Part shown: positions 3,547-16,090 of the stretch, one piece after another
Layout of the letters: each line of letters begins with the position of its first letter
Numbering within the stretch: the stretch's first letter is position 1
Source: Perkinsela sp. CCAP 1560/9
Lineage: Eukaryota; Protista; Euglenozoa: Kinetoplastea
Assembly: GCA_965644495.1 (NCBI GenBank)
Contig: CBFFSA010000086.1
Coordinates: 1-17,010, forward strand
Direction: 5' to 3'
DNA length: 17,010 bases
Program-made: the position numbers and the translations under genes
Notes under the pieces: model-generated
What the model was told of the DNA's origin: nothing
Database searches by the model: none
What the model saw: the letters and a program-made list of their open reading frames with translations, nothing else

Positions 3547-4027
3547 TTCCTTTTTTATTATTATTGTTATCCGAATCATAAATAACTTAAGGCAGGTTGA
3601 ATTACTAGTTTTGGGCTAAAACATGTGAATTTGCTAATTTGATTGCTTGTTTGCAAATCATATAAAAAAAAACAAAAAAAACTGAGATAAAATTGCTAAT
3701 TTGATTGCTTGTTTTCAACTCGTATACCCCAAAAGGACAAAAAAAAATGAATGTTTTTTTGAATTGTTTTTATTGTTATTGTTTTTACTGTTCTTATACT
3801 TACGGGAGATCGAATTGCTAGTTTTGGGCTCCAAAATATGAAATTGCTAATTTGATTGCTTGTTTTAAAATCATATAACCCCCCCCAATGGACCTACTTG
3901 GTTCGTCTAATGGGTCAAAATATAGAGGCAATGCCGCGATTCATACTTCTCCCCCCCTATTAATTGCAAAAAAAAAAAAAAAAAAAAAAGCAAAAAAAAA
4001 TGAATGAGGAAAATAAAAAAAATGAAT

Positions 4028-5789: not shown

Positions 5790-5885
5790 GGTGGAAGTTC
5801 GGTAAGGGGAAGTGGGAAAGTTGGGAAGTGGGAAAGTTGGGAAGTGGGAAGGTTGGGAAGTGGGAAAGTTGGTTTGCTAGTTTTT
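5790..5885 (+). repeat. 96-bp G-rich block with GGGAAGTGGGAA(A/G)GTT tandem units, copy 1
   Basis: Identical to 6333-6428; runs of GGG. Confidence 0.85.
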
Positions 5886-6279
5886 ATATAGTTGTTAAAA
5901 AGAGGAAAAAGATTTAAATAAAGAAAAATATAATCTTTAAAAAAAAAAAAAAAAAAAAAGACAACGGTCCGGAACGCGCGAATGGATTGGGTCTGGATTG
6001 CTTGTTTTTATTTTTACTGTGTCTTATTTGTCGTATATACTTAGGGGAGATTGAATTGCTAGTTTTGGGCTGAGAAAAAAGAAAAAGAAAATATACTTCT
6101 GTGGAAATGAAAAGAATTGCTAATTTGATTGCTTGTTTTAAATTCATATACCCCCCTAATGGACCTACTATGTACTTGGTTCGTCTACTGGGTCAAATTA
6201 TAGAGGCAATGCCGCGATTCATACTTCTCCCCCCTTATTAATTGCAAAAAAAAGACAAAAAAAAAAAAAAAAAAAAGAC

Positions 6280-6314
6280 TTTAACGATAAAGATACAGTT
6301 TCTGTACCTTGTTG
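6280..6314 (+). ncRNA. Spliced-leader mini-exon sequence (no intron follows)
   Basis: TTTAACGATAAAGATACAGTTTCTGTACCTTGTTG matches the kinetoplastid/diplonemid SL pattern AACG…CAGTTTCTGTACnTTnTTG. Followed by AATT, not GT. Confidence 0.8.
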
Positions 6315-6332
6315 AATTATTTTTCCTTTCTT

Positions 6333-6428
6333 GGTGGAAGTTCGGTAAGGGGAAGTGGGAAAGTTGGGAAGTGGGAAAGTTGGGAAGTGGGAAGGTTGGG
6401 AAGTGGGAAAGTTGGTTTGCTAGTTTTT
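6333..6428 (+). repeat. 96-bp G-rich block, copy 2, followed by A11
   Basis: Identical to 5790-5885. Confidence 0.85.
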
Positions 6429-6493
6429 AAAAAAAAAAATGAATGAAAAATTGTTTTGGGCGCAAGAATACCATGCAAGCAAGGTTTAATCCT

Positions 6494-7845: not shown

Positions 7846-8155
7846 GGAACAGAGTAAAAGTATAGCAACTTTTAAGAGCCTGGTTAAGGAGCATAGAGCA
7901 GAAGTCGAGACGGAAATCACCAATGAATGTGTAGAGCTCGAAAAAAGTATTAAGAAAAACCACTCGAACACTACGGCAAGTGTGCGGAACTTACCGCGTG
8001 TCCTTCACTATGCCCGGTAATGCAAAGAAAAATAAGCCCCAATAGGTACGTAAGCACTTTATGAATTTCACAGGGTACGATCGGGGAGACCCCAACATTT
8101 CTTTTAATGAAGTACATCTTCCCTTTATACCAATTTCAGATGTCAAGTTTACCGC

Positions 8156-8236
8156 TCAAAAAAAAAATAAATCCAAATCATTCCGGATTGCTCCGGATGG
8201 TCACTGGCAAGCCAAATCCTTCACAGACAGATTTGG
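8156..8236 (-). mobile_element. 5'-truncated SINE 3' end inserted antisense into the LINE
   Basis: Reverse complement of ~12486-12557. TSD AAGTTTAC(C/T)GC at 8145-8155 and 8237-8247. Confidence 0.8.
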
Positions 8237-8589
8237 AAGTTTACTGCAGAGGAACTCTTTTATTCGCTTTCGCACTGCGGGAAGAATAGAGCCCCAGGGG
8301 GAGACGGTATTCCCATGGAGGCCTTACAAGCAATTTCGACACATCAGGATTTTAGAGATTTATTGCTGGAGCTAATCAATGAAGTGCATGAAACAGGCGT
8401 TACCGAAGCATCATGGAAAGTCATTCTTTAAATACCTATTCAAAAGAAAGCGGATTTATCGCAGCTTTCAAACTGGCGCCCTATTTTCCTTTTAAACAGT
8501 ATAGTCAAGATGATGAATTTTATGATTCTTACTCGAATCCGCCCGAGCGTTGAACCACTTCTTCGAGACAATCAATACGGTTTCCGTCA

Positions 8590-8962
8590 GGGTGGAGGTG
8601 GCGGAGTGGGTAGAGGTGGCGGAGTGGGTGGAGGTGGCGGAGTGGGTGGAGGTGGCGGAGTGGAAAGCACTCAAAGTTTGAAGCACATGGTGCTCAGACG
8701 GCGAGTTCAAACCCGCTCATCGCAATATTCCCGGCGACCTCGCTCTAAGAGGCTGGGCTGATAACCGACTAGGCCCAGTACTCGGAGGACCGTCCCGGAC
8801 CCTCCCCTCAGGGAACCAGCTCCCTTACCCGGCTTACACCTCTTGGGTAAGCCGTGTTGACGTACAGTTCGTCGACGCATCGTGTTGGCAACAGCACGTT
8901 GGTGCCGCCTTGGGCAAGCAGAAACTTAGTTTCTGGAGAAGGATTGAATAATTGGATTTTTT
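8590..8962 (+). mobile_element. tRNA-like SINE with 4x18-bp A-box repeat head
   Basis: Near-identical to 12125-12461. A box TGGCGGAGTGG, B box GAGTTCAAACC (8703-8713), GGATT-type tail. TSD GGTTT(C/T)CGTCA at 8579-8589 and 8963-8973 splits the RT motif GFRQ|NRST. Confidence 0.82.
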
Positions 8963-9916
8963 GGTTTTCGTCAAAATAGATCTACCGCTGGTACGCAAAC
9001 AATCATGAATGAAATAAAGTCCAAGGATTTCGGAATAAAGGTGTTTGTGTAGCGTTCATTGATTTCGCAAAAGCATTCCCATCTGTATCTTTTGCTGCGA
9101 TAAAAGCGTGTCTGAAAGCATTTCACGTGGGCGTTCGTCTATCCGAAATGATCATGTCATTGTACTCAAATCTGAAAGGAGTATTCCGCACACCTTTTGG
9201 TATCACAGATTCTTTTCCGATAACTACAGGAATACTTCAAGGGGACGTGTTGGCCCCTTACCTTTTCGTGATGGTTATGGATCGCATTCTTAATAAGTCG
9301 CTGGACCTGGAAAATCGCGGATTACTTTTGAGTTCAAGCGGGACAAGAAAACGGAACCTACAGGAAAAACGAATTTCTGATATTGATTTTGCAGATGACA
9401 TTGCATTGTTCAGTGATACAAAGGAAGGTCTCCAGGAAATGATTGACGAAACGTCAAAAGATGCTTCCCTGGCGAACCTAAAGATAGCTGTAGGTGTTAC
9501 AAAAACCGCATGGATACCTTTCGGTAAGGTTGCCGGCTCAAATAAGAATCTCCAGACAAAAGAACTGGAAACGGTACCTAGAGTCGATTCGTATCCACAT
9601 CTAGGGCATCTTTAAGACAATGAAACATCATCTACAATCAAAGATCGTTTGAAACTTGCTTGGTCCTCATTTGCCAGCATGCGAGGAATATGGATTTCAT
9701 CTTTAAGCTCTCATCTTAAACTCAGACTATACGACGTGCTTATATACCCTATTCTGAACTTTGGTTCAGTGGCATTGCACATTTCTCAAAAAATGTTGTG
9801 TTCGATTGATTATTGCGTTCGGCTACAACGGAATTGCTAATGGAGACTTGATGGATCCAATGCACTGTGGGACTGCAGTGCTAAAAGTATGAAAAGTGTC
9901 CCTAATTTTAACAGAA

Positions 9917-11640: not shown

Positions 11641-12020
11641 CAAAAAAAAACTTTGAATTCTTGCCACTCCGCCACCTCCCCCCTACCCCGCCCCCTCCCC
11701 CCCAGTGTCGTGATACTGTACGCTCAATACGGTGGGTTTTCCCATGAGCTCTTGAAAAAAGGAACAAGGCTCAGAAATGGTGTGTAATCCTTTTGAATGC
11801 TCCTGTACGTGCCGCTTCATCAGGGAAACAGTCAGTTCCACCCGAATGCTCGCTTTTGCACATTCTTTGCAGGTGTATAATTCACCTTGTTCAGCAAAAC
11901 AATGTTGCTATAGCTCGTAAATCTGAGGTTTACTTTTGTGCTTCTTGCTAGCACTGTGCTTGAGGGTAACACGTAGAGTTTTTTTTCTTTCCTTTCTTAT
12001 TTTCAAAGAAAGCGCAGCAT

Positions 12021-12120
12021 TTTAACGATAAAGATACAGTTTCTGTACCTTGTTGGTCTGAGAAGCTTCGAATTCTAAGTTCGCTTGAAGGCCCCGGTTC
12101 CCGAGAAGGGAACTGGGGCT
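12021..12120 (+). ncRNA. Spliced-leader RNA sequence (mini-exon + intron)
   Basis: Exon 12021-12055, then GTCTGAGAAGCT (T. brucei intron starts GTATGAGAAGCT). Stem I AGTTTCT/AGAAGCT spans the splice site; further hairpins at 12069-12083 and 12091-12119. Confidence 0.8.
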
Positions 12121-12564
12121 TAAAGGGTGGAGGTGGCGGAGTGGGTAGAGGTGGCGGAGTGGGTGCAGGTGGAGAAGTGGGTGGAGGTGGCGGAGTGGAA
12201 AGCACTCAAAGTTTCAAGCACATGGTGCTCAGACGGCGAGTTCAAACCCGCTCATCGCAATATTCCTGGCGGCCTCACTCTAAGAGGCTGGGCTGATAAC
12301 CGACTAGGCCCAGTACTCGGAGGGCCGTCCCGGACCCTCCCCTCAGGGAACCAGCTCCCTTACCCGGCTTACACCTCTTGGGTAAGCCGTGTTGACGTAC
12401 AGTTCGTCGACGCAACGTGTTGGCAACAGCACGTTGGTGCCGCCTTGGAAAAGCGGAAACTGGTAGAGGACGTCGGCCTCGGAGCTTCCAAATCTGTATG
12501 TGAAGGGTTTGGCTTGCCAGTGAGCATCCGGAGCAATCCGGAATGATTTGGATTTTTGGATTTT
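12022..12564 (+). mobile_element. SL-RNA-headed tRNA-like SINE (composite retroelement)
   Basis: SL RNA + 4x18-bp repeat + A/B box head + structured body + (GGATTT) tail, bounded by direct repeat GCAGCATT at 12014-12021 and 12565-12572. Confidence 0.72.
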
Positions 12565-12589
12565 GCAGCATTCACTATGGTGATATGCC

Positions 12590-13843
12590 TTGCCCAGAGC
12601 TGTATTAGAGCTCAATTGGCTTCCTCCACCCCCGGCACCGGAAAGCGATACTGCGGACGACCCCTGCGATGCGGACCACGATGACTCAGAAGACATAGAA
12701 GAAATTGTAGGAAAAGAGTTCTACAGTAGCAGGACATTTCGAATTAATATTTCGATGTCTCACACGCACAAAATCCTTAAACAATTTGAATCAAAATGGC
12801 AACTGCCTTTTGCCTCGGCCAACCCTCCGAGTACACGAGCCATAGCTTCACATGGATCAATATGAACCGTGTAATGAAGTTCCTGGCAAACATCTCAAGT
12901 GAGTCAGATCACACAGAACTAGAAATCAGTGACGATGATTCGTCACAAGTCTCTGAGTTCGACAACGGTATCGTAGAGGCCCCTCTAATGATCACCGAAC
13001 ATTATTGTGCAGTTCTTCTCCTATGCAGGCATTGTCAGCGTAAATAAGTAAAGAGCTGAACTAGCTCAAGAAGAGCCGGATCATGATTCAGATTTTGAGT
13101 GCGGGACAAATCGAAGACGTCGTCGCGGACGTCGTGCTAATGGGAGATACGCCTTTGAGAACATTGAAGGCCTCCCGGAATTTGAGCCTGGAGATATTGT
13201 TGAACAACAGTTGCGCTCTTTGCACACTGCGCCAGCTATACCAGGTTTTCCCATATTGAGTTCTTCAAAAGAACCTGGGGCACGAGCTCGAAGCCAGCTT
13301 CGAGTAGCGAAACACATGGTGGTATTGTTTTCCCCATGGACGAAAGGCTCACCGAGCCATGAAATGACCCTAGAAGGGTTTGAAAATGCTTCGAAGAATA
13401 CTGAGAACGCGGCAAATTTGTTTCGACGCAAAGGTGCTTGCACTCTGGAAGAAACAAGATTAGCACGCAACATTGCGTACGAAAATGAGCTTGAAGTGCG
13501 AGAGGTTGAACCCCATCTTCAATATGCTCTTGAAGCACAGCAGAACACTGCAGTGGTCAATGAAGAGCGATTGGTTCAGCAGAATGCATACTGCGAACTA
13601 CAAATGCGAACTTTAGCGACCGCGTTAGTAGGTTCTACTGAGAACTCCTCTGAAGGAAATGTTGATCTTTCATCGGCAATGACAAGGACGAGGTCCAATA
13701 TTTCAGTCATAAATGCGCGAGAGCGCTATGCTGAAATGATTCAAAACGAACGACTTGCAACTTCGGCTCAATCTGAGCCAAGTGCACCAGTGGACAGAGC
13801 TCATTTTAATGAGGATCGTCCACTGGCTCGCAGTAATCAATAG
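12590..13843 (+). pseudogene. Possible Helitron2/Helentron RepHel remnant (region between Rep and helicase)
   Basis: RRRGRRANGRYAF…QQLRS…PAIPG…HMVVLFSPW resembles the Helentron RGR..N.R..F…LR…LF.PW segment. No HUH or helicase motif is visible. Confidence 0.4.
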
Positions 13844-14519
13844 GCTCTTCGTTAAACGCGGTGGTTGCTTTCAACTTAGAAGTCACTCATGCTGCGCGCT
13901 TCGCGTTGAAAACTACCGCCGCGTTTAACGAAGAGCCTAAAAAAGAAAATTTAGCCTGGAAAACGGAACGATTATAGCCAAAAATAGCCGAATTTCGGGT
14001 AAAAATGGGGTGATTTTCGCGTATTTTTGCTGTCAGAGCACTAAATCCGACATTTGCGCGTGGGAAATCACTCGTAGGAAAGCCTACCGAACGTATTGGG
14101 TAGAGAATGCGACTCCAACCATACCATTCTTTCGTCACAAAAATGCCCCTTTAGGTCCGAAAAATACTTTTTCACCTTTTTTAGTCAAAAATGGGTCATT
14201 TTGAGGGGCGCACCACGGTTTGAAGAAGTGATACCTTGAGAAAACAACTGCGGAGAAAGCTAGTATAGGTCCCAAACTATCCAAATACAATAGGGGAAAC
14301 GATTTTGGAAAAATATTGTTTTTGTCATTTTTTTCGCCAAGTTGAAATTTTTTTCAAATTTTTTTCCGAAAAAATCCGAACTTGGCGGACCCGTCCTGCG
14401 GATACGCGGGGGGGTCACCCCCGGGTAGGGGGGTGGAAAATGCGCGCCAAGACCCCGGCTACCCTTTCTGCGGTTTTTTTTCGAAAACTAATTTTTTCGA
14501 AAAAATTTGCTCGACCATG
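13841..14519 (+). repeat. ~680-bp interspersed repeat (putative non-autonomous DNA element), copy A, starting with a 99-bp hairpin
   Basis: Closely matches 15402-16090 throughout; ends …AAATTTGCTCGACCATG. Confidence 0.85.
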
Positions 14520-15326: not shown

Positions 15327-15395
15327 GACCACTTTTTGTATTAAGACCACTTTTTGTATTAAGACCACTTTTTGTATTAAGACCACTTTTTGTAT
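15327..15395. repeat. 18-bp tandem repeat GACCACTTTTTGTATTAA x ~4
   Basis: Perfect tandem units abutting repeat copy B. Confidence 0.9.
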
Positions 15396-15401
15396 CTTTT
15401 T

Positions 15402-16090
15402 TAGGCTCTTCGTTAAACGCGGTGGTTGTTTTCAACTTAGAAGTCACTCATGCTACGCTCTCCGAGTTGAAAACCACCGCCGCGTTTAACGAAGAGCCTA
15501 AAAAAGAAAATTTAGCCTGGAAAACGGAAAGATTATAGCCAAAAATAGCCGAATTTCGGGTACAAATGGGGTCATTTTCGCATATTTTTGCTCTCAGAGC
15601 ACTAAATCCGACATTTGCGCGTGGGAAATCACTCGCAGGCATGAATGAAAGCCTACCGAACGTATTGGGTAGAGAATGCGACTCCAACCATACCATTCTT
15701 TCGACACAAAAATGCCCCTTTAGGTCCGAAAAATACTTTTTCACCTTTTTTAGTCAAAAATGGGTCATTTTGGGGGGCGCACCACAGTTCGAAGAAGTGA
15801 TACCTTGCGAAAACAACTGCGTAGAAAGCTAGTGTAGGTCCCAAACTATCAAAATACAATAGGGGAAACGATTTTGGAAAAATATTTTTTTTGTCATTTT
15901 TTTCGCCAGGTTGAAATTTTTTTCAAAAATTTTTTTCCGAAAAAATCCGAACTTGGCGGACCCGTCCTGCGGATACGCGGGGGGGTCACCCCCGGGTAGG
16001 GGGGTGGAAAATGCGCGCCAAGACCCCGGCTACCCTTTCTGCGGTTTTTTTTCGAAAACTAATTTTTTCGAAAAAATTTGCTCGACCATG
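15402..16090 (+). repeat. ~690-bp interspersed repeat, copy B
   Basis: Direct repeat of 13841-14519. Confidence 0.85.

Follow-up and report, generated by a model that had tools for sequence, protein, structure and literature searches.

How does a complete spliced-leader (SL) RNA come to stand directly in front of a short interspersed element (SINE), and did the two enter the genome together? This question is raised by positions 12014-12572 of the window, by which we mean the whole stretch of 17,010 nucleotides that was analysed. An earlier note on this DNA had described an SL exon, a GT splice donor and a hairpin-bearing intron joined to a SINE, and all of these elements were found at this place. 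On the plus strand, the unit begins with the left target-site duplication (TSD) GCAGCATT (12014-12021), whose final T may equally be counted as the first T of the SL copy. It is followed by an exon copy of 35 nt (TTTAACG...CCTTGTTG; 12021-12055), which makes up the leader sequence TTTAACGATAAAGATACAGTTTCTGTACCTTGTTG and is identical to the exons of the SL genes on C1. The adjoining intron copy of 67 nt (12056-12122) starts with GTCTGAG, the GT donor being its first two bases (12056-12057), and ends with ...GGGGCTTA past the terminal stem-loop. An AA linker (12123-12124), which is absent from the SL gene (TTT at this point) and from the usual SINE 5' end, connects the intron to a whole SINE (12125-12564). 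The latter is composed of a head of four 18-nt units (GGGTGGAGGTGGCGGAGT and variants; 12125-12196), each of which contains the A-box-like motif TGGCGGAGTGG, a body (12197-12544) with the B-box-like motif GAGTTCAAACC at 12238-12248, and a 3' tail of GGATTT-type repeats (12545-12564), the same ending that was seen in every full copy. The right TSD GCAGCATT (12565-12572) closes the unit.

The genuine SL genes and their leader

Positions 12021-12122 of the window constitute a complete SL RNA, which showed 98% identity to two tandem SL genes at C1:661252-661650. These genes have a period of 297 bp and common upstream and downstream sequences, and their neighbour is a 5S rRNA gene, a linkage often found for euglenozoan SL genes. 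They end with ...GGGGCTTATTTGCG, and after ...CTTA they carry only TTT, continuing as TTTGCG. It had been remarked that a T-tract is missing behind the window copy. There is indeed none, but the true SL gene itself has just TTT and no long T-tract. In three public runs, contigs led from the SL 3' end into TTTGCGTTACAATAAC and were far deeper than the unique flank. The depth in run X1 was 1545 for the SL gene contig versus approximately 46 for the unique flank, indicating that the SL array is collapsed in the assembly. Each 297-bp SL unit also contains a tRNA-like piece (GGGAATCGAACC...) on the opposite strand (L003, C1:661252-662160), which was not called by ARAGORN, this program finding no tRNA beside the C1 SL genes.

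For the RNA of the SL gene, three stem-loops were predicted, the first of which contains the donor (-45.8 kcal/mol, z = -6.5), and no clear Sm site was recognised. For the window copy a z of -4.5 was obtained. Its hairpin at the terminus is intact, comprises 14 bp and is followed by UA, the 3' end of the intron. Alignment of the two genes with the four chimeric copies described below disclosed two private substitutions in the window copy. The first changed A to C at donor position +3 (GTCTGAG versus GTATGAG in the other five sequences; C at 12058), and the second converted the intron sequence GAACTC to GAATTC (T at 12076). The 5' and 3' junction words of the window insert were repeated by contigs of public runs, which are possibly the assembly's own data and therefore count little as independent confirmation.

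The leader possesses the euglenozoan core CAGTTTCTGTAC and the ...TTG/GT junction, both of which are listed for kinetoplastid and diplonemid leaders (PMC3795323). Closest in style is the leader of Diplonema, of which the opening AACGAT is reminiscent, whereas exon and intron lengths are unlike those of D. papillatum. The literature search yielded no match to the exact leader sequence. While the exon had been introduced as a 35-mer, which is correct for the window copy, the true leader is probably 38 nt long, with its second nucleotide copied as T, since the gene has AAC in front of TTTAACG and a C at -1 was present in 22 of 24 exon-only retrocopies (L008-L030 and the window), most of which read ATC at these three positions. 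Contigs of four runs split exactly after position 12055 into many different sequences. For a leader present on mRNA 5' ends, which the earlier note had made a condition of its reading, this is indirect and weak evidence.

Insertion site and the SINE family

The 8-bp repeat GCAGCATT brackets the SL RNA and the SINE together, and the probability of an exact 8-mer match at fixed ends by chance is about 1.5e-5. On both sides, 12014-12572 is bordered by sequence of an older repeat family, three paralogues of which (C18:36.7k, C31:91.9k and C8:115.8k) have the left flank running directly into the right one, with an overlap on one TGCAGCATT. These empty sites with a single TGCAGCATT demonstrate that GCAGCATT is a true TSD and that SL RNA and SINE entered as one insertion. 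The earlier note had suggested looking for such a site and had considered that the repeat might have arisen by chance; the low probability together with the three empty sites corroborated that it encloses both parts as a TSD.

We also determined the limits of the SL part. When the two genes were aligned with the four dispersed copies, identity extended from T(TT)AACG to ...GGCTTA only. What precedes each dispersed copy resembles neither the gene nor the sequence in front of any other copy. Hence, the possibility that a normal SL gene promoter or spacer precedes position 12021 was not borne out, the sequence there being unrelated to the C1 genes. Behind ...GGCTTA, the genes go on with TTTGCG, whereas each of the four chimeras shows 2-5 A before its retroelement. 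Within the window, homology to the SL gene begins near the 5' end of the transcript and stops at ...GGGGCTTA after the last stem-loop. Judged by these sequence limits, the SL part is a copy of a processed RNA, lacking promoter and downstream gene sequence, and since the intron was retained, the template was the unspliced SL RNA.

The junction of the window is also present at three loci at 4.11-4.12 Mb of C1 (L039-L041, C1:4106560-4124846), in which the SL RNA is reduced to its last 10 nt and a C-rich repeat has taken the place of everything upstream. The loci share the 3' flank of the window over approximately 470 bp at 97% identity and are therefore segmental duplicates that were truncated later, not new insertions. 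That so little of the SL RNA was kept indicates that the locus has been rearranged since the insertion. Thus, a count of copies having the same junction but different TSDs, as proposed in the earlier note, gave no independent one.

For the SINE family, at least 246 candidate copies were detected in the assembly, nearly all of them without SL. At the loci examined, ordinary copies have TSDs of their own of 8-13 bp and a variable number of head units, and some are 5'-truncated; extra nucleotides are frequent between TSD and head. Given these features and the number of candidates, the sequences argue that the SINE is itself an active retroposon. An ordinary copy without SL (96% identity) resides on the plus strand of the window at 8591-8952 (8580-8963 with TSDs) inside the RT reading frame of a LINE. 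Its TSD comprises 11 bp (GGTTTCCGTCA, GGTTT(C/T)CGTCA) and the copy starts at GGGTGGAGG. This start had been said to coincide exactly with the point where the SL part ends; the two agree to within 2 nt. The same LINE harbors, on the minus strand at 8150-8239, a 71-nt 5'-truncated 3' end of the SINE with its tail.

Pattern matching revealed that the A-box-like TGGCGGAGTGG, a spacing of 39 nt and the B-box-like GAGTTCAAACC are conserved in nearly all copies examined. This spacing, if counted from the A-box-like motif of the last head unit, is tRNA-like. However, ARAGORN found no tRNA in the window, nor did Rfam give a tRNA match on the window (E up to 1) or on 12000-12580 (E up to 10), so that the head is not recognisable as a tRNA and the term tRNA-like used previously for this SINE holds only for its box-like motifs and their spacing. 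In a wider comparison with Rfam covering the window, 12000-12580 and 40 loci, the SINE and the chimera matched no SL, tRNA, 7SL or snRNA model. Among the loci examined and in the window, no LINE was found to share the 3' tail of the SINE, and folding of SINE and LINE 3' ends gave no significant common structure. At C2:658-18189, a tandem array with a period of approximately 2 kb contains one full and one partial SINE per unit, which identifies it as a satellite built from the SINE.

Sister chimeras and the origin of the unit

A search of the assembly with the SL intron recovered exactly seven copies, which represent the two genes and four independent chimeras, one of the latter (C49:34325) being duplicated on C20. 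As the assembly comprises just 21 Mb in 110 contigs, the copy counts given here are lower bounds. In the chimera at C2:801576, the SL RNA is followed by AAACAAAAAA and another subtype of the same SINE family, with the linker AAACAAAAAAGAGC and a TSD of its own, (ATT)GAGC. The chimera at C49:34325 joins SL RNA to a LINE in which three 18-mers and an RT frame are present, while at C25:23874 (L002; minus strand) the SL RNA precedes an array in which the 18-mer AAGACCATCGTTTTTTAT is repeated over more than 1.5 kb. No junction is common to two independent SL chimera loci.

A further chimera contains 5S rRNA instead of SL RNA (L062:1500-2100, C42 approximately 11817-12330; minus strand). Here, a full-length 5S rRNA (Rfam match of 99 bits over model positions 1-120) precedes AGAGC and a member of the same SINE family. 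The TSD AAGGCGACC surrounds the fusion, which lies within the RT frame of a LINE. Among the 40 loci, Rfam matches to 5S rRNA were confined to L003 and L062. The identical build of this chimera indicates that fusions of small RNAs with retroelements are a general by-product in this genome. Upstream of the 5S-SINE chimera there are two stutter or partial copies of the 5'-terminal 18 nt of 5S rRNA (GGGTACGACCATACTAAT). At the loci examined, the 18-nt reiteration at the heads of elements looks like a property of the way in which cDNA synthesis ends.

Of the two origins that had been put forward for the window unit, a template-switch chimera and an SL-RNA-derived SINE family, the former agrees with what was directly observed, namely the anatomy of the unit, its single TSD pair, the empty sites, the limits of the SL part, which are precise to the RNA, and the independent sister chimeras, three with SL RNA and one with 5S rRNA. 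We conclude that window 12014-12572 is very probably a chimeric retropseudogene, which originated from a single retrotransposition event with a template switch of the RT as in U6/L1 chimeras. The order of copying, the jump itself and the enzyme responsible are inferred as follows. A LINE RT primed at the target would have copied the SINE RNA from the GGATTT tail to the 5' end. Instead of stopping there, it would have jumped to a mature SL RNA, which it copied from the 3' end up to about nucleotide 4-5 of the leader, after which the hybrid cDNA would have been integrated with a duplication of 8 bp of the target. The A linker may be due to a jump onto SL RNA already carrying a few A, or the enzyme may have added a few non-templated A before the jump, two versions that are indistinguishable here. 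By analogy, a block at modified cap-proximal nucleotides is a plausible cause for the stop of the cDNA at about nucleotide 4-5. Cap 4 of kinetoplastids comprises such modified cap-proximal nucleotides. R2, the best solved relative of the LINEs of the window, has an RT that reportedly jumps between templates in vitro, as described by Bibillo and Eickbush.

Alternatively, an oligoadenylated SL RNA might have been retroposed alone and the SINE might have been inserted into its short A tail later. This would be in line with the A residues following ...CTTA in all chimeras and with the frequent insertion of retroelements into A runs in this genome (e.g., at window 6280). The sole TSD pair, however, encloses both parts, the junction has only two A, and not a single stand-alone SL RNA pseudogene was present among the seven intron copies. 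Moreover, the head-on architecture is common to the four SL chimeras and the 5S chimera. Since there is neither a second TSD around the SINE nor a leftover A tail behind its 3' tail, a nested pair of insertions is disfavoured, and altogether two successive insertions are very unlikely.

It is very unlikely, too, that the copy, although generated by a template switch, is expressed as an additional trans-splicing donor or regulator. Its exon and terminal hairpin are intact and GT is present, but no SL promoter was carried along, donor position +3 is mutated from A to C and the intron bears a second private change. Besides, the C1 duplicates lost nearly the whole SL part and yet were retained. 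No run recorded as RNA contains this stretch. A weak argument comes from run X5, which is RNA by guess only and was available as contigs: the exon was covered, but there was no depth on the intron or the SINE. In one X5 contig, the leader forms the end and a fold-back of this same leader lies in front of it. With no SL promoter brought along and two private substitutions acquired since, the SL-SINE copy of the window is most likely an inert pseudogene. The earlier statement that trans-splicing donors are dispersed through the genome was overstated, as there were four events, none of them including the upstream region of the SL gene, and the window donor is altered. Dispersed functional donors are unlikely.

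The idea of an SL-RNA-headed SINE family, in which a master SL-SINE fusion is amplified and spreads splice donors, has hardly any probability. It could refer to the same SINE family being joined to SL RNA at two loci (the window and C2:801576) and to the window junction recurring in the three C1 duplicates. Yet, the two SL-SINE junctions differ (AA versus AAACAAAAAAGAGC) and involve different SINE subtypes, the C1 copies are segmental duplicates, and seven intron copies stand against at least 246 SINE candidates with no junction repeated independently. Finally, a SINE that landed behind a genuine SL gene, or a DNA-level recombination that set an SL gene beside a SINE, can be dismissed as extremely improbable even though multi-copy SL genes are possible insertion targets, because the sequence upstream of 12021 is not the conserved upstream region of the C1 genes but an unrelated repeat with empty-site paralogues, the downstream TTTGCG of the gene is missing and the TSD lies outside the SL part; provided that the C1 genes are the real SL genes, a genuine gene with a SINE behind it is refuted by the empty sites and the upstream alignment.

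The U6/L1 (PMC4476161) and Magnaporthe (PMC2104539) chimeras are, by the accepted explanation, due to a LINE RT that switched templates when it had reached the end of the first one. Mammalian U6/L1 and other snRNA-LINE chimeras (Buzdin 2002, 2003; Garcia-Perez 2007; Doucet 2015, PMC4476161) resemble the unit described here in that a full small nuclear RNA at the 5' side and a retroelement at the 3' side have the same orientation, that one TSD pair surrounds both parts, that a promoter is lacking, that junctions are unique and that template switching serves as explanation. They differ in the captured RNA, which is SL RNA (exon and intron) here and has no mammalian counterpart, and in the partners, which are full-length elements with reiterated 18-nt heads in our case and 5'-truncated L1 in mammals. 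In addition, a few A bridge the junction here, the host is a euglenozoan, and the LINEs of the window are of the restriction-like endonuclease (RLE) type, not L1. The WEIRD/MGL/Mg-SINE chimeras of Magnaporthe grisea (MINE; Gogvadze 2007, PMC2104539) similarly combine an abundant non-coding RNA with a LINE or SINE inside direct repeats, and they represent a non-mammalian example with several independent chimeras per genome. The WEIRD RNA, however, is of unknown function and some of its chimeras were amplified to a family, whereas a defined splicing cofactor was captured here and no amplification was seen. Furthermore, the switch in Magnaporthe occurred at internal consensus sites and not end to end as in the window.

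Non-LTR retrotransposons tied to SL RNA genes are known from trypanosomatids (SLACS, CZAR, CRE1-2) and nematodes (NeSL-1), and the RLE-type RT of the window belongs to the same broad group. Those elements insert into the SL exon of array genes, whereas in the window a complete SL RNA is part of the inserted cDNA and the target is an unrelated repeat. An SL-gene-specific insertion of this type was rejected, as the SL copy is uninterrupted and located inside the insert, not at the target. The SL relics of dinoflagellates (PMC5585692, PMC12014239) are comparable insofar as DNA copies of the leader mark retroposed RNAs, of which this genome has hundreds of exon-only candidates, but they stem from spliced mRNAs and have no SL intron, in contrast to the window copy, which retains it. 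The literature search disclosed no report of captured unspliced SL RNA, of SL RNA pseudogenes or of SL-derived SINEs. This appears to be the first case found of unspliced SL RNA captured by a template switch of an RT, the kind of chimera itself being already known.

If our interpretation is correct, chimeric retropseudogenes formed by RT template switching extend from mammals and one fungus to the Euglenozoa, and unspliced SL RNA is able to serve as the captured partner. The chimeras would define the two SL RNA ends that the RT encountered, i.e., a 3' end with ...CUUA and a few A and a 5' stop at about nucleotide 4-5, and they imply that reverse transcription took place where SL RNA and 5S rRNA were at hand. 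The idea of mobile trans-splicing donors is not supported by them. A more far-reaching notion, which we regard as speculative and rather doubtful, is that end-to-end template jumps are routine for the retrotransposon machinery of this genome, the last approximately 18 nt of a finished template being reiterated (SINE heads, LINE heads, 5S 5' end) and nuclear small RNAs being captured regularly. Should this be true, the SL chimeras would be raw material for new SL genes or SL-headed mobile elements, and their limits would show, for SL RNA in vivo, where the mature molecule ends at the 3' side, whether it carries oligo(A) and where modifications near the cap block copying.

Exon-only copies and LINEs of the window

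A genome search with the 103-nt SL RNA gave 409 candidate SL-exon matches, seven of which were full-length. Forty matches were scored. Apart from the seven with an intron, these are exon-only copies, which continue into many different sequences, in some cases with poly(A). In the window, positions 6280-6440 comprise an SL exon without intron, 18 nt, a 97-nt segment identical to 5790-5886, and poly(A). This insert sits in an A run and its empty-site paralogue was found at 3960-4010 of the window. It has the appearance of a short RNA that was trans-spliced, polyadenylated and then retroposed. The 5' ends of several LINEs (L011, L012, L014, L017, L021 and L023) display a unit of approximately 30 nt both before and after the SL exon, in the order unit, SL, unit and body. 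These heads give the impression of repeated copying of a capped 5' end.

The LINE ORF on the plus strand at 154-2340 of the window encodes an RT and, behind it, the CCHC and PGD...LDF motifs typical of an RLE, and its best solved relative is R2 of Bombyx (8gh6). In a protein search with the RT, unnamed proteins from ENA assemblies were the closest relatives, the assignment of the LINE to the RLE type being made by motifs only. The hairpin at 15393-15510 gave sub-threshold matches to plant miRNAs in Rfam, which are probably spurious. It has arms of 43 bp and belongs to the region 15327-15510, which starts with about 3.8 copies of an 18-nt unit (GACCACTTTTTGTATTAA), and it recurs at 13841-13946.
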